The notes beneath the pieces were generated by a model. That model saw only the letters and a list, made by a program, of their open reading frames with translations. It was not told the origin of the DNA and made no database searches. Positions 643 through 31,255 of a DNA stretch of 64,000 bases are shown here, one piece after another. Source of the DNA: Dendrobates tinctorius (taxonomy: Eukaryota); assembly GCF_039654945.1 (NCBI RefSeq), contig NW_027361819.1, forward strand, positions 4,278,001-4,342,000, in the 5' to 3' direction. How positions within the stretch are numbered: the stretch's first letter is position 1; each line of letters starts with the position of its first letter. A program made the translations under genes and the position numbers.

Positions 643-658
643 TTAGGAGACAGAACAT

Positions 659-4904: not shown

Positions 4905-4920
4905 TTATGGCGCTGGTGCC

Positions 4921-4967
4921 GGGAATTTCACCCCATCACGCTGGAACATTCTGGGCCTTTCGCTTCC
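4921..4967. promoter_or_regulatory. Candidate immune enhancer motifs: NF-kB-like GGGAATTTCA plus Ets-IRF composite GGAAGCGAAA (minus); copy 36352-36398
   Basis: Motif matches only. They lie in non-TE-looking DNA; the unit-2 copy is ~7 kb upstream of the copy-1 CARD exon. Confidence 0.3.
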
Positions 4968-10841: not shown

Positions 10842-13800
10842 CTAGGAGATATTAAACATTTCCTTTAAGCTGTTGAGGGCATCTTCTCCAGTCATTACCT
10901 TCCAGTCTTCAGGCAGTCTTGCAGGTTCTGCATAAAATTCTTTAGCAAATTCTCTGTTAAATTTGGCGAAAATGAATTTCCAGTAATCTGAGGACTTAAT
11001 GCTGGGGTCGGGTTGGATGGTCCAGTCTGGATAGTACGTGCGATACTCTTTGTATAGGTGAAGTTTACAACCAGTGTCTAAATTACTGAATGAATTTTCA
11101 GACACAACAGATGACGTACAAATGTCGGTCACTAATTTTTTTCCTCTTTCCCATCTGTAATGTCCTAAACCTTGAGGTCTATGGACAGATGCAAAGTGTT
11201 CGGTATGGTCGGCACCTTCAGCCTCACAGGGGACTTTACAGAATGGACACTGATGTCCACATCCAATCACCTTACTGAACAGCTCATCCTGAGGCTTCAG
11301 CTTGAGTTTGGAGAGCAAGTCTGGGAAAGTCATGGACTTAAGCTGTGCCAAGATCTGTTGTTGTGTAGATGCAAGAAAATCCTGACTACTAGTGGAGAAC
11401 TGACGAACATCAATTGTGTTATTGAAAGCCGTGATTGCCATTGCTTCCGGTGAAATCACAAGCTTTTCATCCAACGCCTTCTGGACATTTTCTAAGAATC
11501 GAGGAATGTCTTCACTCTCCAGAATGGTCTCATCTCTAAGGACGTCCTTCACATCTTTGAGGACCGAGCTGATGAGAACTGCCTGTAATGGTTGTAGAGT
11601 TGCTCGCTCCTCATACATTTCTTTAATTTTATTTTGGATCCATTCTTTACAGAAGGTTTCATAAAATTTTGTATATTCAACATATTTTTTCAAAGACAAT
11701 TCATCCAGTAAGTCCTTCAGTAGACTGTACTGGAAAAAGCTTCGACTTTTGAATATTTGGTTGCTTGAATCCTCTAAAATGTCATCCACCATCTTCTTCC
11801 CCAGATGACTGTAAACGTAATCGATTATTGCGGGGCTTAGACACTTTGTGCAGAACTGTTTGACTCTGCTTTGTGATTCATCTTTTGCTTTAAAAACATC
11901 AAGAAATACAGTCAGATAATCCGGCTTCAGGTTGTCCAGACACGTTTTAGGGTCGTTCCTTTCTATAAAACGATCGTGCATCTGTTGAAATCTGGTTGAT
12001 GCTTTTCTAAAAATAAAGAGCTTGATATCCAACTCAAACTGCAATGTGAAGTGGAGATTTTTATTATGTTCATCTTCAAGTTTTCTATTAATCATCTGCA
12101 GAGTTTCCTGGCAATAAGTGTCATCATAGTCCTCATTGGTGTTCTCCATCTCGCTGACGTTTCTGTCGCACATTTCTATAAGTGAAGTAGCAAGATGATC
12201 AAGCTCGTCATAAGATTCTTTTTTTTTCCCAGCCATTTGTTCCCATATTTTCGAAAACCAATGCAGATCTATATGGCTTTCATAAATAATAAAGTTACTG
12301 TGTTGATCAGCCAACGTATTCTCAGCCAACAACGCTTCATTTATATCCGGTCCTTTGTGGCTCATGTCATTTCTAAGTTGTCGGAGAATCGCATCACTCA
12401 CTTTACATCTCTCCAGTTTCTCAATTTGTAAATCTGACAGAGTCTTCTCCCACATGGCATTAAATTCACGTTTTACTTCTTCATCTCTCAGTTCATGGTC
12501 CTTCTCTCTGCAGGTTTTCAAGAGTCCATCAATTTTCTCTTCAATCAACGCCTGGTACTTCTTCTTGATGTCCCGAATCTTTAGTTTCCCCTTTTGAATA
12601 GAAAGTGTTTTTCGATACTTGTCTATCGCATTTCTCCTGAGCTCTCTTCTTAGACCTGTAATGCTCTTTTTAAAATCTTCCCGATGTCTTTCTATCAAAT
12701 TAAGGTTTTCCAAATCCCCTTCATAATATTTCTCCAACAGGTCGATCATTTTCTTCTCCTCTTTATGCAGCAGTTGATCCAGATCTTTGATTGTCTCGTT
12801 GGTGTTTTCATCAAAATTGTGAGTCGGTTGATTCTTAATGTTCGTTTCTTTCCTCATTACCCAATTATGGACCTCTTTAGTAAAATGCCATTCCCACTGA
12901 GAGAACTGCATCGACAGCTTATTATAAGCTTCAGCCACCAGACTGTTCCTGAAGCTGAAGATGAATTTCTCATTTTTGACAGCATTCCACAAGTTTTTCA
13001 CCCACTTACAAAAGTCTGGTATTCTTAAAGCCTTGTCTAGTGTCTTGGTTTGTAGGAATTCTAACAGATATTTTTTAAGTTCTGAAACGTGTTCACTGTA
13101 CCCAGAGTTTACAGGAGCCATTGGTGGGACCCCCTGCCACAGCCCGGGGATGTACCAGCTGTGTTTGTCCAAGTCATAGTCCATGACATCACTGAATTTG
13201 TCAAAGCCACTTTTCTTTTCCATTTTTGCAGCCACTTTTGTCATTTCATTTAATTGTTCTAGGAGTTTCTTCCGGTCTCTAATATTCTTGTCATGTGCGG
13301 ACACGTCGCTCACGTTCTGATGGACAAACTGGCAATTTGGTTTCTTGCCAACTTCTTTCATCCTTAGAAATGCATGGACAACTATCTGTAAAATATCCTT
13401 CATCTCTGTGGTATTTTCCATGGCCATATTCACTATAGTGATGTCACTCAGCCCAACCACGAGTGTGGCCAACTCATTGTCATGTTCATAACTGTCCTCC
13501 AGAGAAAACAATTCAGGAGCCTTCAACCCTTCAGTGTCGATCACCAGAATAAATTCACAACCCATCATCTCCTGAAAGTTCTCCTTCACTTTAATGAGAG
13601 TCATGAAGGCTCCTCGTGTGCATCGTCCACTGGCCACAGGGAACTGTAGACCAAACATGGTGTTCAGGAGGGTGGACTTCCCTGTACTCTGCACTCCCAG
13701 CACAGTTATCACCCTCATCCTGCATTGTCCTCCAGTCTTCTTGTTCAGCTTAGTCAGGACATCAGTTATCCATTTTAAGGGAATATTGGAGGCATCTCCA

Positions 13801-15550
13801 TCAATCAGCTCCAATGGAAACCCATCCAACAAGAGATCCGCAGCAGTGCCTGGAAGGTGACGGAACCTTTTAGCAGATTCATTTTTTACTGTAGAATATT
13901 CAGCTTCATAAAACTGTCCTAACTCACGAATAAAATGCTCAATACCTAATGAACTCTCGGAAATTCTCTTGTCAAGCTGCTTCAGTTCTTGGGCATTGTC
14001 TGCTGCATAAGATTGGTTGCATATCTCTTTATATTCAGCTTGTAGCTTGGATACATTTATTCTTGCAATTAAATCAAGCTCAAACTTCATCCATTTAAGA
14101 AAATATTGTTTCTCATCTCTAGATAAATGTGCAAGTACATTAATAAATAGAGTCATGGCTCCAGGGAGAGCATGCTTATTTTGTTCACTATGAAGTAAAT
14201 GACGTTTTGCCTTTATCTTTGACCGATATATTTCCTGATCTTCTCCACCTTGTTTTTTCATTCTGCAGAATTCCTTTTCTAATGTAGACAACTTTTTCCA
14301 CAGGTCTCCTTGCAGGGTTAAGCTTTCATTCTTAAACCTTTCTACACTTTCTATCATTGAGGTGATGTTCAGAGCATAGTCGCTTGTTCTCAGAAATTCG
14401 GGAGAAGCTTCGTCTATATGGATGTTAAGATCAGAGACTTCTTTAGTAATACCTTTTACTTTTACTAGTTTAGGATTTTTTCTCAGTAGACCATTAATGA
14501 TTTTTTGAACCTTGTTCATGAACTCTGCATCGTTCATGGTGGATGATTTTAGAACAACATTAGCTTTCTCAATCTTTAGGAGAGACATTAGGTTTTGCAT
14601 GTGTTGCTTTGTCTCTGGGTCAACACCTTTGTCTTTACCCGGAGTGACAATGAAATAAAACTTTGTGTCAGAGGGACTGAAGGAGGATAGTAACCTGAAT
14701 TGTCTCTCACACATACCATCAATAAATATGAAGGTGGCTGATGAGATCCGAGTGAGGAAGGTGAACTGCTCCCAGTTGGACTCCAGGTCTCCACGTAGAT
14801 TGGCCACAGCAATCGGCTCTGGGAAGGCATCAGATTTCCCACAAGGAAAGTACCAGGACATTTCCACCAGCCCGTCAGATATCTTCCTCTCAATGTTTCC
14901 TCCATCCATGTTGTCATGTATGAAAAACTCATGATGTTGTTGAGCTGGGTTAAGAACTTGGTTTAAGATCTTAGATTTGGATAACTTATTTGGCCCCAAC
15001 CTGACAAATGAGAAGATCGGCATCTCAATATTCACCACGTTGTCTTCTCTGAACCCTTTACTATCTGCTAGAGACTGAGGTCTCCATTTCTTCACAATAT
15101 CTCTCATTGCCCAACGCATGAAGATGGATCCTGAACCATCACCAGAGGGAAGCAAAAGAGGAACTGGAAACTGGCACATGGACATTTTGGATACGAGTTC
15201 TTGCTGGAGACATTCATCTGAACAGCTGAGGACAGCGCACAGAACATCCAGAGGGTGAATAGATTTCGATTTCTGATTTTGCATAGTTTTACTGGTGAAC
15301 AAATCCAATGACTCATCATCTGCACTTGATCCCAGGTTTAATAGGTCATCAAGTTCTGTTTTTCTTGCATTTCTGTGCAAAGCTATAATATTCATTAGGA
15401 AATGTCCAGGAAGGTCTGCTGTGGTTTTAGGCTTCTGATAATGTAGATTTTCTGGACCGATGCTCAAAATGTCCCTCAGCGTAAACTTTGAATTTCTAGA
15501 CTTCTCCATTCCCAGTTCAACCAGGAGCTCCTTAAATGTTTTTTGTTTGC
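10842..15550 (-). CDS. Large terminal coding exon of a very large interferon-inducible GTPase (GVIN1/VLIG/URGCP-like), copy 1
   Basis: Uninterrupted 1555 aa ORF with G1 GVQSTGKS (13674-13697), G2 CTRG, G3 DTEG, HQNV, family motifs HPLDVLCAV and MSMCQFPVPLLLP, and C-terminal CPFCKVPC..H..H..HRPQG. A splice acceptor (long poly-T + TATAG, AG at 15552-15551) extends the frame 41 nt upstream of the Met at 15509 (GC + KQKTFKELLVELG). Confidence 0.93.
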
Positions 15551-15551
15551 C

Positions 15552-15585
<34 letters not shown>

Positions 15586-16614
15586 ACAAATCGTCTAAAG
15601 TTAGTATTTGATGCACCAAGTATATAATAAAAAAAAAAAAAAAAGTTATCCAGACCCCTTTAGTTTTTCTAACTCCATTTCTGTAGCTTACCACCATTTG
15701 TCATTTCAATAAGCCAACAGCAGAAAGGCTCGTCGTCCCATCTGCTCTGTCCCACAGACTAGTTCTACCAATACTGCCCCCACCATCTGTTCATTGCCAT
15801 AAATGCGTTCAGAGCTCTCCTCCTACACAGTGTGCAGAGTTATGAACTTTGTATTTTTCTTGTCATTTCATTATTGCTCATCTCCATTCTTGGAAGTCCA
15901 GAGGGTTACTAAACAATATATAATAAAGCAACAGTTTTGTCTTGACAATCTGGGTGCAGAAATATTCTGCAACTAAAGTGTAAAGTTTCCATTTTTTAGA
16001 GAATAAGGAGCCAAAACAGCTCAATGAACAAAACCCATTTCTGACATTTCCACAGATCTCAAGATGAGAGAATATATATATTAGGAAAAAAACAAAACAA
16101 AATACCAGTAGTGATGATTGCCTTGGACAAGACTATTAACACTGTAGTGCCTACCTCAATAAACATGTGTCACGAATAAAGTCATGCCGGCTCAGACGAT
16201 GCCCAGATTAACAAGGTCCGCGTCACATGTTGAAGAACCAGGACGATCTGATAAATGGGCTATTGGAACAAACCATTCATGGCCAAGGCACGAGAATCTG
16301 GATCTGATGAAATGCTACTATAACAGCAGACCAAGTGAGAGGATATATGAAGCGTATGAGGAAATCTGGATGTGGATACAAGACCTGCATGTCCACTGAG
16401 AAACAACTAGTCACCCAACATTTCAATGTCAAAGAAAAAGGCCATTATCACAACTTGAGATTGATGAACTGCACTGCAGATCCACCTAACATGAAGACCC
16501 GGAAGAACATGTGCAACTCCCTGAAGATCCTGATCCAAGCCTGCAACCAGAGAGGACTGCAGCCGATCTGAAACAGAAGATCTTAGATAAAAATTAATAC
16601 CAAAGATAGACAAT

Positions 16615-17850
16615 TGGGTCACCCTCCCAGGGCAGCGGGGTACTTGATACCAGGTCGGTGCAAGGGGGGGGGGGGGGAACGTGTCACAGCAGCGGTGACC
16701 CGGTCCATGGCCCTGGGCACCCAAATCAATGGTGGTTTTCAATGTAATAGTTTGTGACGCCACCTGTGGTGTTCGGCAAGCGAGATGTTAGGCCGACGCT
16801 GCATGCAGATCTGCTGGGACTGATGATATGGTGCAGCAAAGATGGTGTAGCTCCCCACAGGTGGAGCTGTAGTCCCAGGGCAGTGTAGCTGTGAGATTAG
16901 AGGAGAGGCACGAATGGTGTGGAGAATGGTACCCAGGTGTAGCAGTGCTGAAGGTTTTAGCACACAAATGAATGGAGGACACCAGGGCTTGCAGTTTCAA
17001 AGCTTTACTCACAGTCCGCGGTGCACACTGGTACCTGCCGTGTCCTCCGGGGCAGAGACTCAACCTCCCGGGCAAGTCAGGACTCTCCTCTCCAACACTC
17101 CGCCAACATGTACCCTTCTGAATGACTCCTCTATAGCGCCTTGTGGTGTGAAGCACCCCAGTACTTAGTTACCCTGGAAAGCCTCTTACTAGATGTTCCC
17201 TAGAACTCTCCTTGTACGGCAGACAGCTGTAGCCTACTTCGGGGACTCGCCCTCTCCCGAGCCCCAGCTCTCCATACAATTTCTGTTGTGCCCCAAGTCT
17301 TGGATGGGAGTAGTGCATTTACAGCCTACTACTCCACCAGTGTCTGCTGCAGAACCATAAGTGTCCATACAACCTCGGGGACCGGGCCCCAGCCTTGCAC
17401 TGAGAACCTATAGGCAGGGTTCCTCTTCCAACCCACGTCTCCTCTGTTCTCTCTACTCCTTGGTTCTGTAGTGGTCTCTCTTTCCTATGGAATCTTAGGC
17501 TACAGTTCTAAGTCTTTCTCCTTCTCTCGGACCCGTCCTCAGACTCTCCCGACTGTCCTTCTCCCGCCTGACCTCCCAGACTGACTTCAGACTGAACTGT
17601 AATTCTAAACCTTCCCAATCTTTTATATGGATCTCAACTCCACCCACCTCCCAGCACATCCAGTGTTCCAAGCAGGGAACCACCAAAGGTGCTCTGCTAC
17701 TCTAAACACTGAGCCGCAATGTGGTTGTGCAGAACTACCCTGTTGTGTTGGAGCGTGGAAAGGAGTTTCCAACTTTCCCAGACGGTGGGGCACTACACCT
17801 TAGGAGAAGGTGCAGTACCTCTGTGGCGACTGAGCCTCAGGGGCACCACA
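16615..17850 (-). mobile_element. Solo LTR-like element (family X) inside the R4-like element; copy 48180-49430
   Basis: TGGGTCACCCTCCCAGGG...GGGGCACCACA termini; collinear with 25004-26264. No intact TSD. Confidence 0.75.
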
Positions 17851-18568
17851 CTGCCAAGGCTCAGCTGAAACACCAGACAGTATGATAGAAGATGCGAATA
17901 GAGCATTTTTATCAATACCTACCACAACTCAAACTAATGTACTGATCTATGCTACTGCCTCATCAATCATGGAAATGCTTGACTATACAATCAGCAAGAA
18001 AAGTACATGCCCCCTTGGAAAAGGAGACTGGAGACAAAGATCAAGGTGACACAAAGGGAAGTCAGCCAACTAAGAAATACAGAAGGGTGTAAAGATCAAG
18101 AATAAGACCAAGCTGGACAAGTACAGAGGCCTGACCCCAACTGAGGCCCTAGAGACTGCTAAACAGAGGCTCACCGCACTCGCTGCAAGACTAGGGAGAT
18201 ACAATAGAGAAGCTGAGGCCAAGAAGATAAATGCTCTTTTCTCCAGAGAACTATGCAAGGTGTACTCCCAACTACAGAGGAACAGCACAAAGGCTGCAAC
18301 TCCACCAATAGCAGAGACTGAATACTGGAGGAACAGATGGGAGAACACCAGTGCAACATGGCTGCAAGATCTGAGAATGAAACAGCAACCACCTAGAGCA
18401 AGTACCAGTCACCATTACAGAAGCGGACATCCAACAGCGGGTCAAGAACATGAAGAGCTGGACAGCACCTGGCCCAGACATGATCCTCACCTACTGGCTA
18501 GAGAAACATCAGTACATGAACACATGGCAAATCAGATAAACCAACTGCTAGAAGAAGGCCACCACACA

Positions 18569-20559
18569 CAGGGGCGTATCCAGGGGGGGGCAGCCGGGGC
18601 ATATGCCCCGGGCGCAGCTGTCAGGGGGCGCCATCTGGCCGCCTGATGCGGCAGTCCAAGGAGGAGAGTCGAGACTCCCCGTCAGCGGCATTCTGCCGCC
18701 CCCACACTCAGATGATTCTCCCGTTCTCTGTCTGAGCCGGCTGTCAAACTGACAGCTGGCGCAGAAAGTGCTGCGCGTCGGTGTACTAGCGTCTTCAGAC
18801 GCCAGTACATACATGTGACTGTCTGTCAAATCACTTGTTCTGTAAGCGCCAGTGCCGCGGTGTCTCACCGCCGCTGGCACTTCCGCATCAATGAAGCACC
18901 AGCAGCGTGATCAGGTCACATGATCACACTGCTGACGTCACACGCCGGCGGCCGGCTCTTCAGAGGCGAAGACTCAGGCAGGGAGGCAGGGGGGGGGACG
19001 CTAGCGGCTATATGGAGTCAGTGCAAGGGAAGATTGGGCCCAGACAGTGTGTGAGGAGCAAGGCCATGGATGGTGCAGACATATTCATGTGGTGTGGTGG
19101 AGAAAGATGAACATATGGGGGGGAAGGAGAAACCTAAGGACATTATGGGGGAACCTGAAGATCTTATGGGGGAAACCTGAGGACATTATGGGGGAACCTG
19201 AAGATATTATGGGGGGGGAACCTGAGGACATTATGGGGGGGGACCTGAGGACATTATGGGGATAAGGGAACATAATGTGTGGGGGGATTTTGAGTGGGGA
19301 GGGGAAAACAATGTGTGGGGGGATTTGGAGTAAGGATATTTAATGTGTGAGGATTTGGAGTGGGGATGGGGGATACTTGTGTGTGGGGAGATTGAGGACA
19401 TAAATGAAGAGTATGTATGAGGGCATGTATGAGGAAACAGTATGGGGGGATGGGTGCAGGCACAGTATGGCGAGTGGGTGATGGGTGCAGACAGTATAGG
19501 GAGCCAAGCGGGTAAATGCATGTGGACACATTATGAGTAGCGATGGAAAAAAATCTATGTGGACACAATATGGGGAGTGAGGGTGATGGGATGTGTGCAG
19601 ACACAGTATGGGGAGTCAGGGGGTATGTGTGAGCAGACAGTATAGAGTGTGAGGGGGTAATAATATGAGGAGACAGTATGGTGAACAGGGGGATGTTAGA
19701 GGAGACAGTATGAGGAGGGAGGGGAATAGTGTGAGGCAACAGTATATTGCAGATATTTTTATTTCGGAGCATTATAATGACACTTCTATCTTTAAGGGCA
19801 TCATGTGGAGATTTGCTGCAGAAGACCGGAGAAGATGGAAGTCTGCAGAGGCCGCTGTGGATGAGAAAACTCATCAAGGGGTCTGGACAAGAAGAAAAGA
19901 ACAACTCCAGAGACGTCATCTATAAGGTACCTGGATGTAAATATTTGTGATACTAATTCTCATGTTTTTATTTGTCAGGAGCATTACAGGGGTTGTCCAG
20001 GTTTGTGCTGAGTCTGCAGACATTCTATGTGACTGCAGACTTCTGAATTCTCACAGTGCTCACTGAACGTGGTTAGGATTCTCTCGTGCCGGTAATTTAC
20101 ATACATGCGGTCACATGCTGACTAGACATGTGTGGCCTCACTCAATGATAATGACAGAGCGAGGCCGGGCACGTCTAGTCAGAATGTGGCCAGAAGTATA
20201 TAAATCACATACTTGTGCTGACATGACCGTGTACTCTTGCCACCGGTACGGGAGAATCCTAAGTGTGCAGTGCATTTGTTGTGAGAATTCAGAAGCTGCA
20301 ATGTCAGGATTCAGCTCTGCAGGCTCCAGTAGTTATCACATGGACACTTCACTATGAAAATCGCATACTTATGGTCTTGTGATGAGCTTCTCTTCCTGCT
20401 TCTTTCAGTTTTTCATTGAACATTGAGATCATTAGGGAGAACAGCTCGTCAGTACATGACTAAGGTTGGAAATCGCTTATGTACTGGGGAAGGGGGGGGG
20501 GGGGGGGCGGCCGAACCGACTTCTTGCCCCGGGTGCCAGAAAGCCTAGATACACCTCTG
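18569..20559. mobile_element. Non-autonomous hAT-type DNA transposon inside the R4-like RT; copy 50149-52137
   Basis: Exact 8 bp TSD ACCACACA (18561-18568 and 20560-20567) and imperfect TIR CAGGGGCGTATC / GATACACCTCTG. Internal ~21 bp GGGGGAACCTGAGGACATTAT repeats. Confidence 0.85.
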
Positions 20560-21169
20560 ACCACACAGGTTGGCTAACACAAGGAACAGTGCTGATCATG
20601 AAGGATCCTCACGAAAGGAACAGTTCCATCTGGCTACCGCCCGATAACCTGCCTTACAACATGGAAACTCCTGTCAGGCATCATAGCCACCAAGATACAG
20701 AACCATATGAACCAGTACATGAATCCAGCTCAGAAAGGCATTGGGACCAACACCAGAGGCTCTAAGCACCAGCTCCTAGTAGATTGGTCTGTCTGGATCT
20801 TGAGTGACTGCTCTATCTCAGCACAGCCTGGACTGACTACAGGAAAGCCCATGACTCAAATGCCACACACGGATCTGTGAATGCTTGGCTCTCTACAATG
20901 TCAACAGGAAATTAAGAACCTTCCTCAAACTCAATGGGGCTATGGAAAAACATTGGAAGTCAACTCAAGACAACTAGCGCAAATGGCCATCAAATGCGGC
21001 ATATACCAAGGTGATGCACTGTCCCCATTGCTGTTCTGCATAGGCTTGAACCCCCTCAGTTAGTTAATTACAGAGTCTGGCTATGGATACAAAGTTCAAG
21101 AGTGGAAGCACCATCAGCCACCTCCTCTACATGGATGACAAAGTTATATGCGAAAAACGAATGAGATAT

Positions 21170-22108
21170 CAATATCTAACAAACCGAACATTCAGTGTCT
21201 GCCTCTCCCACACCACCTCCTCACCTTGCCCCCTGTGTCAGTGTTCCTCAAGGCTCAGTTCTAGGACCCCTACTCTTCTCCATCTACACCTTCAGCCTGG
21301 GACAGCTCATAGAATCCCACGGTTTGCAGCATCATCACTAAGCTGATGACACAGATTATTATTTATTATAGCGCCATTTATTCCATGGCGCTTTACATAA
21401 TACATACAAGTACAGTAATCTTAAACAATACAAGTCACGACTGGTACGGGATGAGAGGACCCTGCCCGCGAGGGCTCACAAGCTACAAACGCAGATCTAC
21501 CTATCTGCACTTGATCCTCACCTCCTTACCAAAATCCCACAGTGTCTGCTTTTTCAGCTTTCTTCTCTGCTCACTTTCTACAACTGAACTTGGACAAAAC
21601 AAAAATTCATAATCTTTCACCCCCCACCCCCCATCTCACTCTACCCCTCCACCAGACCCATCCATCAATGTCAATGGCTGCTCACTTTCCCCAGTCCTGC
21701 ACGCTCGGTGCCTTGGGGTGATCCTCGACTCTGCCCTCTTTCAAGCCACATAGCCAAACCCTTGCTTCCTCCTGCCATCTCAAACTCAAAAATATTTCCT
21801 GGATCTATGCATTCCTTGACACCACAAAAACACTAGTGCACACCCTTATCTCGCCTACCATAGAAACCTTCAAAGAGAACTTGAAGACCCACCTCTTCTG
21901 ACAAGCCTACAACGATCCTCAGTCTACAGAACCGCCGTACGACCAGCTCTACCTGCTCCTAGAGAATCCTCACCCATCCCTTGTAGACAGCCCTTGCGGG
22001 CAGGGTCCTCTCCCCTTCTGTACTTGTGTCTTGTATATTGTACTTTTCTATATTTACCCCTTTTCACTTGTAAAGCGCCATGAAATAAATGGCACTATAA
22101 AAATGTAT
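21170..22108 (+). mobile_element. 5'-truncated, internally deleted L2-clade LINE fragment with an inverted L2-tail/SINE piece at ~21355-21490; copy ~52748-53684
   Basis: Encodes [21 protein letters not shown] and FKENLKTHLF. 3' tail GTAAAGCGCCATGAAATAAATGGCACTATA; its reverse complement occurs at ~21367-21396. Confidence 0.75.
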
Positions 22109-24142
22109 AGTTCACTGATCCACCTGACAAGGATCTACAGTGAAGACATCGGGATGTCCTTCGGACTGGAGACGTGCAGCCGGTGGGTAAAGTGAGGCAA
22201 GGTAGTCAAGACTGAGTGGAGTTACCAGAAGGGCATGTAGCAGATGTACAGACATGCTACAAGGACCTAGACATCCCACAGGGATACAGTAACCATGATG
22301 AGGAGGCAAGGAAAGCAGCAACATTCAAATATCAAAAGGTAAGACAAGTCCTGAAGAGCCAGCTCAATGGGAAGAATAAAATTCACACCATCAATACATA
22401 TGCCATGCCAGTTATCAGATACCCTGCTGGCATAGTGTGCTGGCCAAAAGAATAGATGGAGGCTGCAGATGTAACGACACGAAAGCTCCTCACAATGCAT
22501 GGAGGTCTCCACCCCAAGTCTAGCACCCAAAGATTGTATACCAACAGAAAGGAGGGTGGTCGAGGCTTGATAAGCATCTAAGCCACCATCACAGATGAAA
22601 CAAGGAGTATTCAGGAATACATCAGAAGAATCGTACCAAAAGATGAGATGCTGATAGAAAGCCTAAGGCAACAACAAGTCTGGAAACAGGATCATGAAGC
22701 GCCATGGCTAGACAAGCCACTGCATGGGATGTACCATCGACAGAAAATGGTGGTGGTTGACATGGAGACGTCCTACCAATGGCTGGAGAAAGCTGGACTC
22801 AGACAGCACAGAGGCGCTAATCATAGCAGCACAAGAGCAAGAACTAAGTAACAGATCCATAGAAGCAGGAGTCTACCACACAAGACAAGACCCAAGGTGC
22901 AGACTATGCAAAGAAACCTCAGAACCAGTCCAACACATAGTGGCAGGATGCAAAATGCAAGAACAGCATATACTGAATGCCACAACCAAGTAGAGGAAAT
23001 TGTATACAGGAACATCTGCACAGCATATGGGCTAAGACCCCTCAAGACCAGGTGGGAGACCCAAGAGAAAGTGGTGGAGAATGAAAAGGCTAAAATCCTG
23101 TGGGACTTCAAAATCCAGATGGATAAGCAGGTGTTGGCTAACCAACCAGACATTGTGATAGTAGACAAGGATCAGAAGACAGCAATGATAATAGATGTTG
23201 CTGTCACTTGGCACTGCCACATCAGAAAGAATGAATATGAGAAGCTGGAGAAAAACCAGGGCCTCAAAGGAGAACTGGAGAAGATGTGGAAGGTGAAGGC
23301 CACAGTGATTTCAGTGGTGATAGGAGGACTTGGAGCAGTGACTCCTAAGTTGGAAGAATGGCTACAACAGATCCCAGGAGCAACAGCTGAGCTCTGTCCA
23401 TAAAAGCGCAATGCTGGGAACAACTAAGAGCCTGTGCAGAACCCTCAAACTCCCAGGCCTCTGGTAGAAGATCTGAGAATGAGGAAGGACAACAAAGACC
23501 ACCCCAGTGGGGGAGAGAAGGAAGTTTTTAATTATGTATTATATATTTCTGACCCTCCTCAGTGTGATATAGTATATAGTAATATGGCCACTTTGTTCTC
23601 TCTTGATATTCGCTTTGAGAAACTGCTGCGAGTCACCACTGCTGGTGAAATCACAGATCTGTGGTGATCGAGCTTTGAGGTGGACCTGCCCATCTGGAAT
23701 CAAGTGGCTGACATATCACTTTCTAGCACCCTGGTTGAATACTTGTTTATACGCATCAATAACGGCCATTGTTGGGTTCAATAAATGCCGTGACAGACCT
23801 TCATCCAACAGCAAGGCTCATGTCATGAGTGGTCTTTTTGCATGACAGCCATCAGCACAGAAGGCCAAGGCCTTGTTTCAGCCTGGAGGCTCAGAGCTTT
23901 GGGAGCGGCACAAGGCAGTTATCCATGTTCCCTCACAATTTCCTGAACACTTTTTAAACTGTTCTTAATGCGGCCAAGAGACAAGATTGTAAGTGGGTGT
24001 AGCCGAGACGTACGTTTATTTTTGCCATGGTGGACATACCACACAGCATCACCGAGGCAGTTACCAGGCAGATTGCTTGGTGGGTGGAGCCTCCAGGTGA
24101 CCTATAAATAGCTGTAATAGTTTTTCCAGTCAGTGTTTCAGC

Positions 24143-24435
24143 AAGGGCCCCAGAAGGCAGCCACCAGCCCAGCCAGGGCCCCGCCAGAGGGCAGCCACCA
24201 GCCCAGCCAGGGCCCCGCCAGAGGGCAGCCACCAGCCCAGCCAGGGCCCCGCCAGAGGGCAGCCACCAGCCCAGCCAGGGCCCCGCCAGAGGGCAGCCAC
24301 CAGCCCAGCCAGGGCCCCGCCAGAGGGCAGCCACCAGCCCAGCCAGGGCCCCGCCAGAGGGCAGCCACCAGCCCAGCCAGGGCCCCGCCAGAGGGCAGCC
24401 ACCAGCCCAGCCAGGGCCCCGCCAGAGGGCAGCCA
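24143..24435. repeat. 34 bp minisatellite (CAGCCAGGGCCCCGCCAGAGGGCAGCCACCAGCC); copy ~55720-55912
   Basis: Perfect tandem units. Eight intact cores plus one degenerate in unit 1; six in unit 2. Confidence 0.95.
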
Positions 24436-25003
24436 GTGAACATGTGAGGAGATTATTTTTTCCCCCCTTCCAGTGGGCAGAGTAGAGATGGACCGACCAG
24501 AAGCCTTTGGATTGCATGAGAACTTGGACCCTTCAGGAAGATGGCATTCGTTGGTCTGCACAGCACCCTTAGGCTACCAGAATACTATGCTGTGGACACA
24601 GGAGGAGTACAGGCTGGGAGAGTAGTCCCCTATAATGGAGAATGGAAAACTGGAACCCTACAACATAAGGAAGGCCAGAGGAGGCCAGGATATGGGGGTC
24701 TGCTGGGGAACATCACCCTTGTGGGATAGAAGTAGACTATTGTGTCAGCTTGGATAACAGGATGAGCTCTGTTCACACTCGCCGTTTATCACGCCTCATA
24801 TGTGCCGTTTCCTGCATCTGTCTAAGTGTTGCCCGTCTGAGGAACTTTGTCATCTGCACATGTAATACAGCTGAAAATATTACTAGTATCCATATGACCG
24901 CTGCAGCCAATTACTGGGCTCAGTGGTAATTCCCATAAGCCCCCAAAACGCTGAGTCTAGTTCTTAGAAAGCATTGTAACACCAAATCGTACCAGCATGT
25001 AAC

Positions 25004-26264
25004 TGGGTCGCCCTCCCAGGGCTGTGGGGTACTCGGTACCGGGCCAGTGTCAGGGGGATGCGTGTCACAGCAGCGGTAACCCGGTCTGTGGCCCTGGGCG
25101 CTCAAATCAATGGTGGTTTTGTGGTTAATGTAATAGTTTGTGACGCCACCTGTGGTGTTTGGCAAGGGAGGTGTTAAGCTAGCGCTGCATGTAGATCCGC
25201 TGGGACTGATGGTGTGGTGCAGCAAAGATGGTGTATCTCCCCACAGGTGAAGCTGTAGTCCCAGGGCAGTGTAGGTGCAATGGATGAGGAGAGGCACAGA
25301 ATGGTGTGGATGCTGGTACCCAGATGTAGCAGTGCTGAAGGTGTTAGCAACGAATGAATGGCGGACACCAGGACTTGCAGTTTCAAAGCTTTACTCACAG
25401 TCCGTGGTACACACTGGTGCCTGCCTCCACGCTGTGTCCTCCGGGGTAGAGACTCAATCAACCTCCCGGGCAAGTCAGGGCTCTCCTCTCCAACATGTAC
25501 CTTCCTGAACGACTCCGCCAATGCGCCTTGTGGTGTGAAGCACTCCAGTACTTAGTTACCCTGGAATACCTCCTTACAGATGTTCTTAGAACTCTCCTTG
25601 TACGGCAGACAGCTGTAGCCTGCTTCGGGGACGCCTCGCTCCCGGCTCTGTGTTGCTGTTGTGCCTCAAGTCTTGGATGGGAGTAATGCATTTACAGCCT
25701 ACTACTCCACCGGTGTCTGCTGCAGAACCATAAGTGTCCATACAACCTCAGGGACCGGGCCCCGGCCTTGCGCTGAGAACCTATAGGCAGGGTTCCTCTT
25801 CCAACCCACGTCTCCTCTGTTCTCCTACTCCTTCGTTCCGTACTTGTCTTTCTCTCCTATGGAAGCTTAGGTTGCAGTTCTACATCTCTCTCCCGTGCCA
25901 GCTGGCTCAGGTTACTGAGGCAGCTGCAGCACTCCTTCCTCCATCCCTTCTTCCAGGGATCCTCTCCTGTCTGAGTGACTTCCTACTCCACTGACCTCCA
26001 ATTCTAAACCTTCCCAACCTTTTATATGAATCTGAACTCCACCCACCTAACAGCACATCCAGTGTTCCATGCAGGGAACCACCAAAGGTGCTCTGCTACT
26101 CTCTAAGCACTGAGCCGCTATGTGGTTGTGCAGAACTACCCTGTTGTGTGGGGTGCGAGTGTTGGAGTGTGGAAAGGAGTTCCCAACTTACCAGGATGGT
26201 GGGGTACCACACCTTAGGAGATGGTGCAGTACTTCTGTGGCGACTGAGCCTCAGGGGCGCCACA
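25004..26264 (-). mobile_element. Complete solo LTR-like element (family X, 1261 bp); copy 56481-57741
   Basis: TG...CA termini (TGGGTCGCCC...GGGGCGCCACA) with an exact 4 bp TSD TAAC (25000-25003 and 26265-26268). No coding capacity recognised. Confidence 0.82.
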
Positions 26265-26835
26265 TAACTCACTGAAGGATTTCGCTCTGCTCACCAGTTT
26301 ATCATGAGATTCTCACATTCCCAGCCACATACAGACTAGCTTTTCTTCCTGCTTCTCAGTGAGGCACGGGCTGTAATGTTTCACTGAACATTTAGAGAAT
26401 GATGAAGAGCAGCTCATCAGCACGTGACCAAGTGTGCAAGTCACATATGAGTGGTCACTTGTCTAATCAAACATATACCGTGTATAGGAGGAGGCTCCAA
26501 ACTGAAAACCTAGATCTGGCTCCGATTCAGGATGATGGAGAAACTTCAGAAACCAATTTTATTATCCCAAAAGTATTTTTTTTCTTCATGCCATGCAAAC
26601 AAAGTCCATTATTCAGGTGGAAGAATTCAAAATAATGGATGAGACAAAGGTCTCCTCCTCTACATCCAATGGTGGTGACACTTCCCCCCCCCCCCCCCAT
26701 CAAGATTGAAAATCTTTCAAAATCGATTAGGTCATGGGACCAGATTGATAGGAGGGAGCTCCGGCGTCCTCCATTAGGGGATCTAGAGCCGTAAAGTGGA
26801 TGTGCCGTAATAAGACAATGGTGGCTGCATGAAAG

Positions 26836-27852
26836 TGGGTCGCCCTCCCAGGGCTGTGGGGTACTTGGTACCGGGCCGGTGTCAGCGGGATGTGTCACAG
26901 TGGCGGTGACCCGGTCCGTGGCCCTGGGCGCTCAAGTAATGGGGGAATTGAAATGGTGGAATGTGGTTGAATAGTTCGTGACGCCACCTGTTGTGTTCAG
27001 CAAGGGAGGTGTTAAGCCGATGCTGCATGCAGATCCTCTGGGACTGATGGTATGGTCCAGCAAAGATGTAAAAGCTCCCCACAGGTGAAGCTGTAGCCCC
27101 AGGGCAGTGTAGATGTGGTTGGCACGGGGATGTAGCAGTGCCGGAAGGGTTGGAAGCAGACAGACACAGCGGGGTGCAATTTCTGTACCTTTACTTGATA
27201 AATGCAGACCAGGGTCCTGATTACAGATGGTACCGGAGCAGGCTAGCCTGGAAGCAACTCAGGGATTCTCCCTCAGCAGATGGGCTGTGCAGTCTCCTTC
27301 CTAGCGCTTATTTGAGGGATCTCCAGTACTGAGTTACACTGAAGTTCCTCCTGTCAGATGTTCCCAAGAACTCTATTTGTACGGCAGACAGCTGTAGCCT
27401 GTTCCAGGGACTCCTCACTCCTAAGTCCCAGCTTACTATCAGTGTTGCTGTTGTGCCCTCAAGTCTTAGATGGGAGTAGGGCATTTACAGCCTCCTACTC
27501 CTCTGGTGTCTGCTGTAGGACCATCAGTGTCCATACAGCCATGGAGACCAGGCTCCAGTTCATGCGCTCTTGCAGGAGACAAGCTCTTCCTCTCAGCTCT
27601 ATCTCAGCGCTCCTTCCTCACGTCTGCACACTTCACCCTCTGCAGACTAACTGACCACTCCTTCCTCTTGGCCCTCAGAGAGCACTCCTCCCCTTAATTC
27701 CAGTTCAGAGTCTCCCTGCTGGCCTGGAGTGGAACTGTGTTGCATGTATTGGTTAACTGCGAGAGAGACCCTTCACTGCTTCCAAGCCTGGCATTACCCT
27801 CCCTGGAGGAAGGTAAAGCCACTGTGGCAGCCATACTCCTGGGGGCACCACA
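26836..27852 (-). mobile_element. Solo LTR-like element (family X, shorter subfamily); copy 58313-59329
   Basis: TGGGTCGCCCTCCCAGGG...GGGGGCACCACA termini. Its end region resembles the 2504-4278 copy. Confidence 0.75.
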
Positions 27853-28199
27853 TTAGCATCAAGAAACCAACCATCTACAGATGCTTCAAGATCATGAATG
27901 CAGAGAAACAAGAGCTACCAATCATCAAGAGCCTAGTTAGAAACAATGAGTGGATAAACCCCAGAGGCCCCAATAAAAGATAAGTCAGAGTACTGAGGCC
28001 ATGTCATCAGTAACAAGACTACGGTTGTTGGATGGCGTCTTTCCTACTTCATGGATAATTAAATCCGCATTGTCCATTCCAGCTACTAGACTGGTTTACT
28101 TCCATTAACTAGTTACAAAAAAAAAATAAAAAATTCCTCCATCTCAGGAAGCAAATTGTTCTCAAAACCTCCATCCAGGATTTCTTTCAATAGAGGAAC

Positions 28200-28609
28200 T
28201 TAAAGTTTGATGTGAGGGGAACGCTTCTTTATCCTCTTAATATATTGTAGTCATCATATTCTATAGCGCTGCGTACTTACAATTGCTCATTTTGCCTTTC
28301 TACCCAAATAATAATTTTCTATTCTCTGCTCTATGTAGACACAGGAGGTCTCTTGTTCCTGAAAAACCTCATTCTCCCCCTGACAAAGCTGCTCCCTCCT
28401 CCCCCTCACGTTCCCTTTTGCAGTGATGAGTCCTACTACAGGGAAAATTGACCTCTTAGCTACTCCGTTTTTTTTTGTTTTTTTTAATCACTTGATTTCA
28501 CAGACTTAATGGAAAAGAAGAATTATCCAGGTAGAAAGGAGGAATGGGCAACTGATGACTGCAATATTTTAAGAGGATAACAATTCTGATGGTAAGTGGG
28601 CTTCTTTAA
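28200..28609. mobile_element. Degenerate TTAA-flanked MITE (T2/Kolobok-like); copy ~59676-60085
   Basis: TTAAAG...CTTTAA ends and internal inverted pair TTATCCTCTTAATATATTGTAGTCATCA / TGATGACTGCAATATTTTAAGAGGATAA. Confidence 0.5.
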
Positions 28610-29151
28610 GTTTAGCCAATTGGTGCAGAAAATCCAAAGAAACAAAAAGATAAAAAAAAAAAAAAAAAAGCACCAAATCATGTACATTGTGTGTATAGTT
28701 CAACATGAAAAATTTTGGTGAAGCGTCCTCCAACAATCACAGTACACATTTTGTACAAGGCATTGTACTGAGGGGCATGAAACTAAAGTTCTTTATGCTG
28801 CCTAGAAGTATATGGTCGGCAGCACAAGGACAATCTATAGAACTACTGTACAGACTTTAACAACCGGCACCAGGTGACTGTCCAATAACAGCACAATTTG
28901 CATGAAGCCCCCGGATAATCCTTCAGGGCACATGATTTTCTATAAATATTTAAAAAAAAAACAAAAACGGTGACATTTCGGTCTAATTGGACCATGAGAC
29001 TCAGATTTAAGTTTTTTTTGTGCTTCTGTTTTTCCTACATCCCTAAACTTATTCCCCTGCACCCCTCAACATAGTTTTTTTCCCCATATTTTGCCATTAA
29101 TGGATTGTGCAAGTTTGATCTCCCCCAACATAATGGAAGTAGGATACTCAC

Positions 29152-29434
29152 TGTCCTGGAGATGTTCAGATACAGATGACAATCCTGGGAATCTGGGAAT
29201 CATGTTCTGTAGATGATTCAGGAACTTCTGGCAGGCCTCTTCTCCCTTGTGAAGAATCAGGTCCATCAGACTAAGGGTTTTCTCCACCGGACTCACAACT
29301 TCGCACAGATTTCCATGTTCTTCAGAAGTTATAAGCTGGAGAGAGTTCACTTCATCCATGAAACCATCGACGTCCTTCTCAAACACCTCGGAGAATTTCC
29401 ATCTCAGACGGTGGATGGTCTTGGATGCCGCCAT
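29152..29434 (-). CDS. CARD (death-fold) coding exon, 94 codons + 1 nt; predicted first coding exon of the GTPase gene, copy 1
   Basis: MAASKTIHRLRWKFSEVFEKDVDGFMDEVNSLQLITSEEHGNL...EKTLSLMDLILHKGEEACQKFLNHLQ has the CARD pattern (LIT.EE, L.D.I..KGEEAC..FL..L). Acceptor tctcttacatttttcgcag precedes 29451, there is an in-frame TGA before the ATG, Kozak atcATGG is strong, and the donor A|GTGAGT is at 29151 (phase 1). Confidence 0.85.
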
Positions 29435-29753
29435 GATAACTGAAGGTCAGCCTGCGAAAAATGTAAGAGATCAGTTACTACTGCATGAACAGATGGACAC
29501 CGTCCTAAAGAAAAGTATAAAAACTGAGCACTGTGCAATAATATAACGAGGCGCTCATGCCACAGCGAGATACGGACCTTCGAGAAGAGACAAGGGGACA
29601 ACTAGGGAAGAACAGGGAAGAGTTTTCCTGGCTGACCAAGGGGAAGCCAGCAAAAGAGGCAACCATGGATGGACAAGGGGGTGGGAAGAAAAAAAAAAAG
29701 TTAGAGATGAGGACAAAGGGGTGGCTGCAGACAAATACCAATGAAAAAAACAT

Positions 29754-29982
29754 GGTGGCTCAGTGGTTATTACTGTAGTCTTACAGTCCTGGGTTCAAAT
29801 CCCACCTAGGACAACATCTGCAAGGCGTCTATGTTCTCCCCCTGTTCCATGGATTTCCTCCAGGTTCTCCGGTTTCCTCTCAGTCTAAAGACATACTGAT
29901 AAGTAATCTAGATTGTGAGCCCCAATGGGGACAGCAATGATAATGTCTGTAAAGCTGTGGAATTAATGGTGCCATACAATAG
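29754..29982 (+). mobile_element. tRNA-derived SINE (V-SINE-like) with L2-type tail; copy ~61227-61455
   Basis: Pol III A box TGGCTCAGTGG, B box GGTTCAAATCC, V-domain-like ATGTTCTCCCC..TTTCCTCC..CTCCGGTTTCCTC..AAAGACAT, and tail CTAGATTGTGAGCCCC..TGTAAAGC. Confidence 0.78.
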
Positions 29983-30239
29983 AGGAAAATAAATAAAAAT
30001 AAGATTGGGGTGAGAGCAAGCAAGGTGGTTAGAGTAGATGACAGTGAAAGACAAGGGGTGGCAACAAGGCAGGAGGCACCCTAGGGGGAATAGGGAAAGA
30101 CTGGAGAAGGCGGCCCTCAAGTAGAGATCAGGGAAGGATGCAGAAGAGGACAGAGGATATTTAAAAGAACGAAGGGGAAAAAAAAAAAAAAAAAACAAAA
30201 AAAAACACAAGCAAGGCCATGTGCCAACATAGTGATTCC

Positions 30240-30548
30240 TGAGCAGAATTGCACACGCTGCTCCCGTGAAGACACATGCGGTTTTTGACGCGCCTTTTTA
30301 AGCGTTTGTCAAGCGTTTTTGCCCATACAATTGATGGTATGTGGACTCGCACGAGATTCCACAAAATTGATGAACATGCTGCTCTTTACCGATAAGTGAT
30401 TCCACAGCGGTAAAAAACGCACCATTGGCACAACATGTGCATTCTCAGTTAGGAATCCATGGAATGCATTTAAGCGTTTCTGCGGCAGAATCGTGCATTT
30501 AAAATCGCCGCGGAAACGCTTAAAAAGCGCTCCGTGGGCACACAGCCT
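30240..30548. mobile_element. Degenerate Harbinger-like MITE; copy ~61721-62029
   Basis: TGCACACG / CGTGGGCACACAGCC end remnants and internal AAACGC/GCGTTT inverted motifs. Confidence 0.5.
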
Positions 30549-31239
30549 CAAGGTTTCAAAGGACAAGGTCATCGAAGAACAAGGGAAAAGGTTGGAGAAG
30601 AGAGACGAGCGCTGCAGAGGAAGACGCTCCGGAGGAGGAGCCAACACTAGCGGGGTTTCACCACAACGCTCAGTTTATTCAATAGCTCTTGGAATAAAAT
30701 AAAAGTTCCATAATTAGATGTGATTATTATAACAAAAAAAAAAAAAAAAACACCACACAGATACATGCAATGTCAGGGGAGATTATAAAACCTGAACTAA
30801 AGCGATATTTGCAGCGCTGAGCTTTAACAGATCAGGTGCAGATTGAATTTTGTACGATAACTGAGAAGACACTGGATTAAAGACTTCATTGTTCGATGAT
30901 CGTTAAACTCCCCAAGACCATGTTCACATGTTGCATTTTTTGCAGCTCTTTTAATAAAAAAAAATTAAAGTCTGCGCTTAACATCTCCAGCAAAAGCCCT
31001 GAGGTCACAGATCTCCTGCACGCTGGGTTTTTGTTCCAGACTGAGAACTGAGATCTGCGGCACCTTAGAAATCAGTGAGAAAGTTAAGGAAAAAAAAAAG
31101 AGACCCACAGGCTTCGCTGGCTGCATTTTGGGGTGATCAAATCATGCACTGTAATGAGTTACATAATCAGCACAAAAAAAAACAAAACACAACAACAACG
31201 TATGAACATAGTCCAAGGACACTGTGCAACACCACTGCA

Positions 31240-31255
31240 CCAACAGGGGGCGCCA
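31240..31255 (+). promoter_or_regulatory. Candidate CTCF site CCAACAGGGGGCGCCA; copy ~62713-62728
   Basis: Close match to the CTCF core consensus CCASYAGRKGGCRS; one per tandem unit. Confidence 0.4.

Follow-up and report, generated by a model that had tools for sequence, protein, structure and literature searches.

A tandemly amplified gene of Dendrobates tinctorius predicted to join a CARD to a VLIG-type GTPase

Several described proteins share parts of the design considered here. Mammalian GVIN1 (VLIG-1; mouse Gvin1, human GVIN1) is about 2400 aa long and combines a VLIG-type G domain with URGCP and GVIN1 domains, and its coding sequence lies almost wholly in one giant exon; to our knowledge, no CARD has been reported in it. 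Human URGCP (URG4), at about 930 aa, contains the URGCP and VLIG-type GTPase Pfam families and is without a CARD and without the GVIN1 C-terminal domains. Mammalian CARD6 has an N-terminal CARD followed by a URGCP domain, and zebrafish Gbp4 and other GBP-CARD fusions link an interferon-type large GTPase to a CARD that is C-terminal, not N-terminal. Among IFN-induced GTPases, the VLIG family counts as the fourth class (PMC8286824), and human GVIN1 forms a coat around cytosolic Burkholderia, in a paper that does not mention a CARD (bioRxiv 10.1101/2025.03.24.645074).

The window analysed here, 64,000 nt of Dendrobates tinctorius DNA, contains nothing but an array of CARD-VLIG gene copies. Their product shares with GVIN1 the three domain types and the giant exon, with URGCP two Pfam families and the source of its public name, and with CARD6 the order of CARD and URGCP. 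The resemblance to the GBP-CARD fusions is in our reading one of design logic, a functional analogy and not membership: a zebrafish GBP-NLRP1-like CARD (PDB 4irl) is among the structural matches of the frog CARD, but the GTPases belong to different families, a Pfam scan of the window protein giving no match to the GBP-type GTPase domain (PF02263) at E≤1. We consider it highly probable that the window is best explained as a tandemly amplified D. tinctorius gene with two complete units and the promoter of a third, a judgement that covers this account as a whole.

Gene structure and transcripts

Each gene consists of three exons: a short TATA-driven 5′UTR exon, a CARD exon and a giant exon. The features of copy 1 are as follows.

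31411–31417, minus strand: TATAAAT box, letters read directly; about 40–46 nt before the farthest 5′ position observed in RNA
31346–31371, minus strand: exon 1, non-coding 5′UTR, extent as observed in RNA contigs
29452–31345, minus strand: intron 1, 1894 nt; joint in RNA contigs, splice signals checked
29152–29451, minus strand: exon 2, the CARD exon (Pfam, predicted fold, RNA contigs)
15551–29151, minus strand: intron 2, 13,601 nt with GT..AG ends, the AG preceded by a long poly-T tract
10842–15550, minus strand: coding part of exon 3, 1568 codons plus 2 bases, stop at 10842–10844
continuing below 10842, minus strand: 3′UTR of exon 3

Exon 1, which may really begin as much as about 15 nt upstream of its observed extent, ends in the donor GAAG/GTGAGT (the slash marks the exon boundary). 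Exon 2 holds 17 nt of 5′UTR, the ATG, a 94-codon CARD and one extra base that gives it a phase-1 end. Its ATG (29434–29432) had been credited in an earlier note on this DNA with a strong Kozak context and an in-frame upstream stop, and it does have A at −3, G at +4 and an in-frame TGA at 29449–29447. The phase-1 donor and acceptor described in that note are present as well, the former as GAC A/GTGAGT with 29152 the last exon base, the latter as 29 T in a row followed by ATAG/GCAAACAA with 15550 the first exon base. The spliced frame is 4992 nt long, a multiple of three, with a single stop at its end, and encodes 1663 aa that read ...SEHLQD-S-KQKTFKELLVELG-MEKSRN across the junction; the in-frame join of CARD and giant exon that had been proposed from the letters is thus open, and it is also supported by RNA contigs and by identity to a public protein. 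Exon 3 contributes 4709 of the 4992 coding nt, so that the coding sequence lies essentially in one giant exon, a feature of the VLIG family. Within intron 2, copy 1 carries interspersed repeats together with a 34-bp minisatellite; the ORFs of this intron gave no Pfam match.

The type of the sequencing runs that bear on transcription is not on record, and we infer their RNA origin from spliced contigs and adapter read-through. In RNA contigs the CARD exon is bounded exactly at 29151–29450/29453, and in runs X15 and X16 29450 is joined directly to 31345, leaving out 1894 nt that are bordered by GT..AG on the minus strand; one contig stops at 31371 and passes into Illumina adapter sequence. Past the CARD donor, a loose end of 12 nt (TTTTTTGTTTG+C) matches within the window only 15539–15550 and 47112–47123, which are the predicted acceptors of copies 1 and 2, and contigs bounded at the predicted sites with an overhang unique to these acceptors bear out the splice that had been predicted. 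The exon 2–exon 3 junction in RNA is known only from this 12-nt overhang together with an 810-nt overhang known by length alone, reads having been aligned to at most 6 kb at a time against an intron of 13.6 kb; the 810-nt overhang is in a 1127-nt contig of run X14 that extends beyond the CARD donor and has zero differences from copy 1. In run X16, 100% of the sampled words of 14900–15550, the start of exon 3, are present. Because the RNA variant at 29369 (G>C; runs X13, X15 and X16) equals the copy-2 base, transcripts of copy-2 type are present in these three runs; each copy type is transcribed, with splicing at the predicted sites.

The main product might still be something other than the fusion, namely a CARD-only protein made through retention of intron 2, with the giant exon translated alone from an ATG at 15509. 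With intron 2 retained, the frame would run to a stop at 29066 and yield 122 aa, the CARD profile search returned CARD-only matches of 107–195 aa, and numerous frog models in public databases, about 1550 aa long, begin at the internal ATG. However, RNA depth in X13 drops from thousands on the CARD exon to about 7–30 just past the donor, with other runs similar, contigs pass from the CARD donor into exon-3 sequence, and the junction residues (..D-S-KxKxF..) are kept across anurans and align with shark and CARD6 sequence. We regard separate products as extremely unlikely and take the fusion as the main one.

Domains of the product and its relation to CARD6

The 94-codon peptide is, to judge from its Pfam match and predicted fold, a true CARD, so that its earlier identification as such holds up in both profile and structure checks. 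In both copies it matches PF00619 at E=6.2e-8, scoring 33 bits where the curated threshold is 23.9, and AlphaFold2 models it as a six-helix bundle with helix 1 broken (helices 3–9/11–18, 22–31, 37–44, 49–63, 65–78 and 83–97; pLDDT 75, with 82–87 over residues 11–70). The Foldseek PDB matches listed for this model are almost all CARDs, the best being ARC (TM-score by target 0.86, rmsd 1.5 Å). A profile built from 27 anuran N-termini places the CARDs of ARC, NLRC4, ICEBERG, caspase-1 and NOD1 nearest among solved structures, at E=1e-6 to 1e-3, and strongly matches multi-CARD FIIND/UPA (CARD8/NLRP1-like) proteins; because the similarity to solved CARDs is weak (best profile E=1e-6), no CARD partner can be named.

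By its sequence, the gene is a member of the VLIG/GVIN/URGCP family. Exon 3 is predicted to encode URGCP_N/URGCP, VLIG-type GTPase, GVIN1 and GVIN1_C domains, with URGCP N-terminal and the helical GVIN1/GVIN1_C domains C-terminal to the G domain, as in the family. URGCP_GTPase (PF25683) matches over its full length (profile 1–396) at E=5.1e-206 and 2.9e-206 in the two copies and URGCP at E=3.5e-107, and the Pfam families precomputed for the identical public protein are PF26773, PF25974 and PF26772. The G1 motif or P-loop (GVQSTGKS, residues 713–720) and the G3 motif (DTEG, 766–769) are both intact, which agrees, as far as G1 and G3 go, with the earlier reading of a GVIN1/URGCP-like giant exon with intact catalytic motifs. 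From the N-terminus, the 1663-aa product comprises CARD, URGCP, a VLIG-type (dynamin-like) GTPase and a GVIN1-type helical region that ends in a Cys/His-rich motif.

The earlier note had left two alternatives, a full-length CARD6-like architecture or a lineage-specific system, and the former is supported by the CARD profile and by alignment over both domains. The frog CARD profile matches wombat and bat CARD6 at E about 2–3e-9, and in a BLAST alignment of the frog and wombat proteins the CARD is 34% identical and a stretch of about 390 aa of URGCP 37% identical, the aligned start of exon 3 reading KQKTFKELL in the frog and RRKTFKEIL in CARD6. CARD6 differs from the frog protein in having a 180-aa insert between CARD and URGCP, and the CARD6 sequences tested (about 1000–1060 aa) gave no Pfam match to URGCP_GTPase, GVIN1 or GVIN1_C. 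These comparisons indicate that mammalian CARD6 is a truncated, GTPase-less relative keeping the CARD plus URGCP. A URGCP-domain tree, whose root is arbitrary, follows the species tree and places CARD6 on a long branch between the sauropsid CARD-VLIGs and the rest; orthology of CARD6 with the frog gene is consistent with this tree but falls short of proof, as neither URGCP nor GVIN1 of mammals was among the sequences in it.

The tandem array and the distribution of the architecture

The tandem units are about 31.5 kb each and 98.6–99% identical over about 26 kb. The features of copy 2 and of the third copy are as follows.

62888–62894, minus strand: TATAAAT box of copy 2, in an identical promoter string
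62823–62848, minus strand: exon 1 (5′UTR) of copy 2, placed by homology; donor and promoter strings identical to copy 1
60625–60924, minus strand: exon 2 (CARD) of copy 2; CARD protein identical to copy 1
47124–60624, minus strand: intron 2 of copy 2, 13,501 nt
42415–47123, minus strand: coding part of exon 3 of copy 2
27–44, minus strand: TATA-region promoter block belonging to a third copy, exact 18-mer match; gene body left of the window

Both copies keep the signals, as had been claimed, the donor, acceptor and frame of copy 2 being identical. The CARD exons differ by a single synonymous change in codon 22, and over the coding sequence there are 41 substitutions with a pN/pS of 0.36, both frames being open and residues 607 to 899 having zero amino-acid differences. 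The 18-mer promoter block of copy 1 is found again at 62878 and at 27, and window positions 1–6064 are 95–96% identical to 31375–37478.

A unit identity this high is near the divergence expected of haplotypes, and DNA runs containing the sequence may be the source of the assembly itself; the pair might then be an artefact of assembly, with one gene or two alleles set in tandem, or one member might be a dying duplicate. An artefact sits poorly with copies that differ in 41 coding positions, in the length of intron 2 (13,601 nt in copy 1, 13,501 nt in copy 2) and in minisatellite structure, with the third promoter copy at the start of the window and with the presence of both variants in RNA in proportions that differ among runs, and the two intact frames and their pN/pS speak against a dying duplicate. 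In frogs, moreover, large tandem VLIG arrays are normal, and a single genome has many paralogues. We judge it very unlikely that the pair is an artefact or includes a dying duplicate.

The gene had been described as hidden, but the public annotation of the same genome already includes exactly this protein: the joined product of copy 2 is 100% identical over 1663 aa to the independently predicted D. tinctorius protein P0001, named 'up-regulator of cell proliferation-like', whose annotated CDS spans 18,493 nt (42415–60907). The copy 1 product differs from this model at 22 residues. The idea of a lineage-specific system is refuted, since the architecture is annotated from sharks to reptiles; proteins with CARD, URGCP and GTPase are found in sharks, chimaera, coelacanth, all three amphibian orders (salamanders, caecilians and many frogs), turtles, squamates and tuatara, and an alignment to a shark protein, at 40%, runs end to end with the CARD included. 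The earlier note had itself made novelty depend on the architecture being new to amphibians, where at database level it already exists. Public models of about 1660–1760 aa in Ranitomeya, Phyllobates, Rana, Bufo, Ambystoma, Rhinatrema, Latimeria, Chiloscyllium, Callorhinchus, Chelonia, Podarcis and Sphenodon have the same CARD-URGCP-URGCP_GTPase-GVIN1-GVIN1_C order, without architectural difference from the window genes, and bear automatic names only ('interferon-induced very large GTPase 1-like', 'up-regulator of cell proliferation-like').

Possible functions

A motif scan of the roughly 750 bp that precede exon 1 in each copy found neither an ISRE core (GAAANNGAAA) nor a GAS (TTCN2-4GAA), the ISRE-core matches lying only inside the coding exon. 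Interferon induction of the frog gene is therefore unsupported here, although such a scan cannot exclude it.

Both pathogen sensing and the CARD partners of the frog protein we infer rather than observe. One possible scheme is that the protein would self-assemble in a GTP-dependent manner on a pathogen or membrane surface, much as human GVIN1 coats cytosolic bacteria, and that this would bring the N-terminal CARDs together. Once clustered, they could nucleate homotypic filaments with a partner of the caspase-1/ASC/NLRC4 or the NOD1/RIPK2 type, so that coat formation would be coupled directly to inflammasome-like or NF-kB signalling. We hold this proposal as a whole tentatively, at slightly short of an even chance.

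Alternatively, the CARD may be a regulatory or adaptor module and not a caspase-activating trigger, as proposed for mammalian CARD6. It would then tether the GTPase to RIPK2/NOD-type complexes or the cytoskeleton, or auto-inhibit the GTPase, and no inflammasome-like platform would form. Among named mammalian proteins, CARD6 is the nearest relative in CARD and URGCP domain alike; it reportedly binds RIPK2 and microtubules, its knockout is said to leave NOD signalling intact, and we know of no demonstration that it activates caspases. Among solved relatives, moreover, the CARDs of NOD1 and ARC rank as high as those of caspase-1 and NLRC4. However, the frog protein retains the full GTPase and the GVIN1 C-terminus, both missing from CARD6, and the strong matches of its CARD profile extend to the FIIND/UPA proteins. 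In turtles and ray-finned fishes, furthermore, paralogous VLIGs carry a PYRIN domain in the corresponding place at the N-terminus, an arrangement that points to death-fold signalling of the inflammasome type. An adaptor role seems to us unlikely, if still a serious contender.

The literature searched yielded no description of a CARD-VLIG fusion. The CARD-first form is nonetheless the common form of the family in non-mammalian jawed vertebrates, old and widespread, and the modest interest that remains in the CARD-VLIG gene is the unstudied link that it offers from giant GTPases to death-fold signalling.

A CARD exon joined to a giant GTPase exon

An ORF scan of the window returned the following open reading frames:

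10842-15509, minus strand: large ORF of copy 1, 1555 aa
29066-29434, minus strand: small ORF of copy 1, 122 aa, 13.6 kb upstream of the large ORF
42415-47082 and 60539-60907, minus strand: ORF pair of copy 2, 31.5 kb from copy 1

The earlier note had read each pair as one gene in which a CARD exon splices in frame onto a giant exon encoding a very large inducible GTPase (VLIG). This observation is confirmed and proved correct to the base, because start, donor, acceptor and joined frame check out in both copies. The start ATG of the small ORF has A at -3 and G at +4, with an in-frame TGA ahead of it, and the GTGAGT donor is reached after 94 codons and one extra base. Upstream of the first ATG of the large ORF another 13 codons are open, back to a run of 29 T and ATAG, after which the exon opens with GC. 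Joining 29152 to 15550 in copy 1 yields 4992 nt, or 1663 codons, with a single terminal stop; the copy-2 join (60625 to 47123) is also one open frame of 1663 codons with a single terminal stop, and the donor and acceptor strings are the same in the two copies.

A 661-nt stretch, 45% of it CARD exon, had 42-58% of its words in four sequencing runs of D. tinctorius (X13-X16, type not on record), and the contigs of these runs were aligned to positions 26200-31900. The contigs cover 29151-29450/29453 and then stop, thus marking the edges of the CARD exon, and depth is in the hundreds or thousands within the exon but close to background on either side. A joint from 29450 to 31345 splices out the 1894 nt of intron 1 (GT..AG on the minus strand) and connects the CARD exon with a short exon upstream; one contig runs into Illumina adapter at 31371, and a TATAAAT box lies at 31417-31411. 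Given this joint and the TATA box, the gene therefore has three exons. At the other end of the CARD exon, an X16 contig runs past the donor into TTTTTTGTTTG before a shared C. The 12-mer made up of this string and the C has just two matches in the 64-kb window, 15539-15550 and 47112-47123, which are the opening 12 bases of the two giant exons. The junction between exons 2 and 3 was thus read as a 12-nt overhang, as distinct from a contig aligned on both sides. Sequence beyond the donor, recorded by length only, amounts to 810 nt in a 1127-nt X14 contig and 91 nt in an X15 contig, and all sampled words of 14900-15550 are present in X16. The only exon variant seen in the RNA, 29369 G>C, is the copy-2 base and is synonymous (codon 22). 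Copy-2-type transcripts were found in X13, X15 and X16 and a difference-free copy-1-type contig in X14; both copies are transcribed.

Elsewhere in introns 1 and 2, four patches (26200-26390, 26773-27536, 28110-28300 and 29638-29828) stand out by a very high summed depth of RNA words, reaching 18,600 in X13, and by many short contigs with internal joints. These patches resemble interspersed repeats that are transcribed, as opposed to exons of the CARD-VLIG gene.

The description of the gene as hidden is refuted. The top database match to the large ORF is a 1663-aa D. tinctorius protein named 'up-regulator of cell proliferation-like', with CARD, URGCP_N, URGCP, URGCP_GTPase, GVIN1 and GVIN1_C domains. 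The copy-2 product is identical to it (1663/1663 residues), and copy 1 differs from it at 22 residues. The public annotation of GCA_039654945.1 already carries the gene, since this model and an annotated span of 18,493 nt, exactly 42415-60907, rule out an unannotated one. A full-text search of the searchable library found no paper describing a CARD-VLIG fusion. Gene and architecture are already known at the database level and their biology is unstudied; as a discovery the gene adds nothing, because the public model exists, and its value is that of a pointer.

The CARD fold and the spread of the architecture

The structural interpretation in the earlier note is also supported. The 94-aa peptide matches the Pfam CARD family (33 bits against a curated threshold of 23.9, E=6.2e-8), and the large ORF scores E=3.5e-107 against URGCP and E=5e-206 against URGCP_GTPase, which is the VLIG-type G domain. 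The G1 motif GVQSTGKS (residues 713-720) and the G3 motif DTEG (766-769) are intact. As a single sequence the CARD finds only weak matches in the PDB (best E=0.0026), and profile and fold searches were needed. The profile search of PDB sequences ranks ARC, NLRC4, ICEBERG, caspase-1 and NOD1. An AlphaFold2 model built from an alignment of 27 anuran N-termini (mean pLDDT 75; residues 11-70 at 82-87) is a six-helix bundle with helix 1 split into 3-9 and 11-18, and a broken first helix is a hallmark of CARDs. The Foldseek PDB matches listed are almost all CARDs (ARC, caspase-1, NOD1, zebrafish GBP-NLRP1-like, APAF-1, RIP2, CARD8), the best with a TM-score by target of 0.86 and an rmsd of 1.5 A. 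Thus, Pfam, model and fold search all identify the peptide as a death-fold domain of the CARD type.

We searched 1.8 billion representative proteins with a profile of anuran CARD exons. Among the matches in which URGCP and URGCP_GTPase follow an N-terminal CARD are a 1758-aa protein of the lizard Hemicordylus and a 1712-aa protein of the shark Chiloscyllium named 'interferon-induced very large GTPase 1'; a further match, of 1422 aa from the lizard Pogona, is identified by name. Frog and shark proteins are 40% identical end to end, CARD included. A search seeded with the shark protein recovered CARD-bearing VLIGs from several sharks, Callorhinchus, Latimeria, Ambystoma, Lissotriton, Rhinatrema, many turtles, many squamates and Sphenodon. 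This common order of domains from sharks to reptiles excludes a lineage-specific invention, which the earlier note had allowed for, and the architecture is accordingly ancestral to jawed vertebrates.

In this family the N-terminal exon seems to serve as an exchangeable module for signalling or targeting (P0360, P0381, P0327, P0317, P0336 and others, database proteins with swapped modules). In ray-finned fish paralogues, as in many teleosts, the CARD is mostly replaced by fibronectin-III domains, and PYRIN domains occur in some turtle, sturgeon and paddlefish paralogues, being N-terminal in those of green turtle, paddlefish and sturgeon. TRIM RING/B-box plus PYRIN (Mauremys) and immunoglobulin domains (turtles) are found as well. 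The top match of the CARD profile, the 3390-aa database protein P0121, has two complete units of URGCP plus GTPase; automatic annotation has most likely fused two tandem genes here. Strong matches were also obtained to three multi-death-fold proteins, P0126 (Bufo gargarizans, 1917 aa), P0128 (Acipenser ruthenus, 1797 aa) and P0129 (1254 aa). One of these has 10 CARDs, 3 PYRINs and FIIND-UPA, another 5 IRF DNA-binding domains, FIIND-UPA and a CARD, and another 7 CARDs with 2 death domains. Either these are inflammasome-type proteins of an unusual kind, or their gene models have been merged.

Divergence of the tandem copies

Between the units, identity is 98.6-99% in the gene itself and about 95% in the intergenic minisatellite region. 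At the left edge of the window, positions 27-44 repeat the promoter/TATA block exactly; the array therefore continues to the left with at least a third gene unit. The repeats are:

661-1993, 32030-33424, also 62.9-64 kb: 29-bp minisatellite, about 46 copies, upstream of each gene unit
5337-6065 and about 36760-37640: 20-bp minisatellite, about 37 copies, 238-bp higher-order period, intergenic, downstream of each gene
24150-24435: 34-bp repeat, 8.4 copies, 99% identity, intron 2 of copy 1

The unit-against-unit blast alignment breaks at 24150-24435, and the ORF across the 34-bp repeat is 33 codons shorter in copy 2; this repeat probably accounts for the 100 nt by which the two copies differ in intron 2 length. 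Ten long ORFs in intron 2 and intergenic DNA matched no Pfam family. The plus-strand ORFs of 470-500 aa at 606-2077 and 31980-33508, also without a Pfam match, were rejected as genes because they are read-through of the 29-bp minisatellite.

Coding differences between the copies number 41, with 17 synonymous and 24 non-synonymous, and the resulting pN/pS of 0.36 does not support gene-wide positive selection. None of the non-synonymous differences falls in the CARD or the G core, and 17 of the 24 lie in residues 900-1256 (window 12060-13140), a helical segment just after the G domain. Only this segment approaches neutrality (pN/pS 0.78, with 0.05-0.41 in the rest of the protein; comparing non-synonymous with synonymous changes inside and outside it, Fisher p=0.012). 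Recent tandem amplification with amino-acid changes clustered in one helical segment fits pathogen-driven turnover of the gene family.

CARD6 and a possible signalling role

Mammalian CARD6, reportedly 'structurally related to interferon-inducible GTPases', is matched by the anuran CARD profile in wombat and bat. Two regions of the frog protein align with wombat CARD6, the CARD at 34% identity (E=4e-12) and the URGCP domain at 37% (E=1e-60); the second alignment takes in residues from the start of exon 3. In a maximum-likelihood tree of 32 URGCP domains, built without mammalian URGCP and GVIN1, sequences follow the species tree, all anurans form one clade, and the long CARD6 branch joins the tree between sauropsids and the rest. 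This position is as expected of a fast-evolving mammalian orthologue, although it is not proof of one. Together, these data suggest that mammalian CARD6 is a remnant of the CARD-VLIG design.

To our knowledge, VLIGs are the least studied of the four families of interferon-induced GTPases, and it was only in 2025 that a first function was reported for them, the GVIN1 coat. They are listed as the fourth class of such GTPases (PMC8286824), and human GVIN1 assembles a coat on cytosolic Burkholderia and blocks actin tails, in a paper that does not mention a CARD (bioRxiv 10.1101/2025.03.24.645074). Judged by family membership, the frog protein is a VLIG-type giant GTPase. Its GTP-dependent assembly might cluster the N-terminal CARDs, and the cluster could then seed a CARD filament together with a partner of caspase-1/ASC/NLRC4 or NOD1/RIPK2 type. 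We consider this the most economical mechanism, with a chance of being right that approaches even. Its main rival is an adaptor or regulatory role for the frog CARD like that proposed for CARD6; the wombat and bat proteins share CARD and URGCP with the frog protein, these being their only domains, but are without its GTPase domain. A GAS search and a search for the exact ISRE core gave no match in the promoters of either copy (a degenerate GAAAGAGAAC at about 31640, with two mismatches, was left uncounted), and promoter motifs thus lend no support to a possible interferon induction of the frog gene.

A broader and rather unlikely reading of the clustering mechanism is that CARD-VLIGs and the PYRIN-VLIG paralogues of turtles and ray-finned fishes are single-chain 'coat-to-inflammasome' sensors, in which the GTP-driven coat on a cytosolic pathogen would itself nucleate death-fold filaments. 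Such sensors would be ancestral in jawed vertebrates, and mammals would keep only split relics, namely a CARD6 that lacks the GTPase and a GVIN1 that lacks the CARD. For testing this idea, frogs would be a natural system, given their large, recently amplified arrays.

Most non-mammalian VLIGs begin with a CARD and some with a PYRIN domain, which, with CARD6 as a remnant, suggests a direct link between giant-GTPase assembly and death-fold signalling. We found no paper stating this link in the searchable library. It is one that work in mammals would not reveal, and it should be readily testable with frog, shark or turtle proteins.
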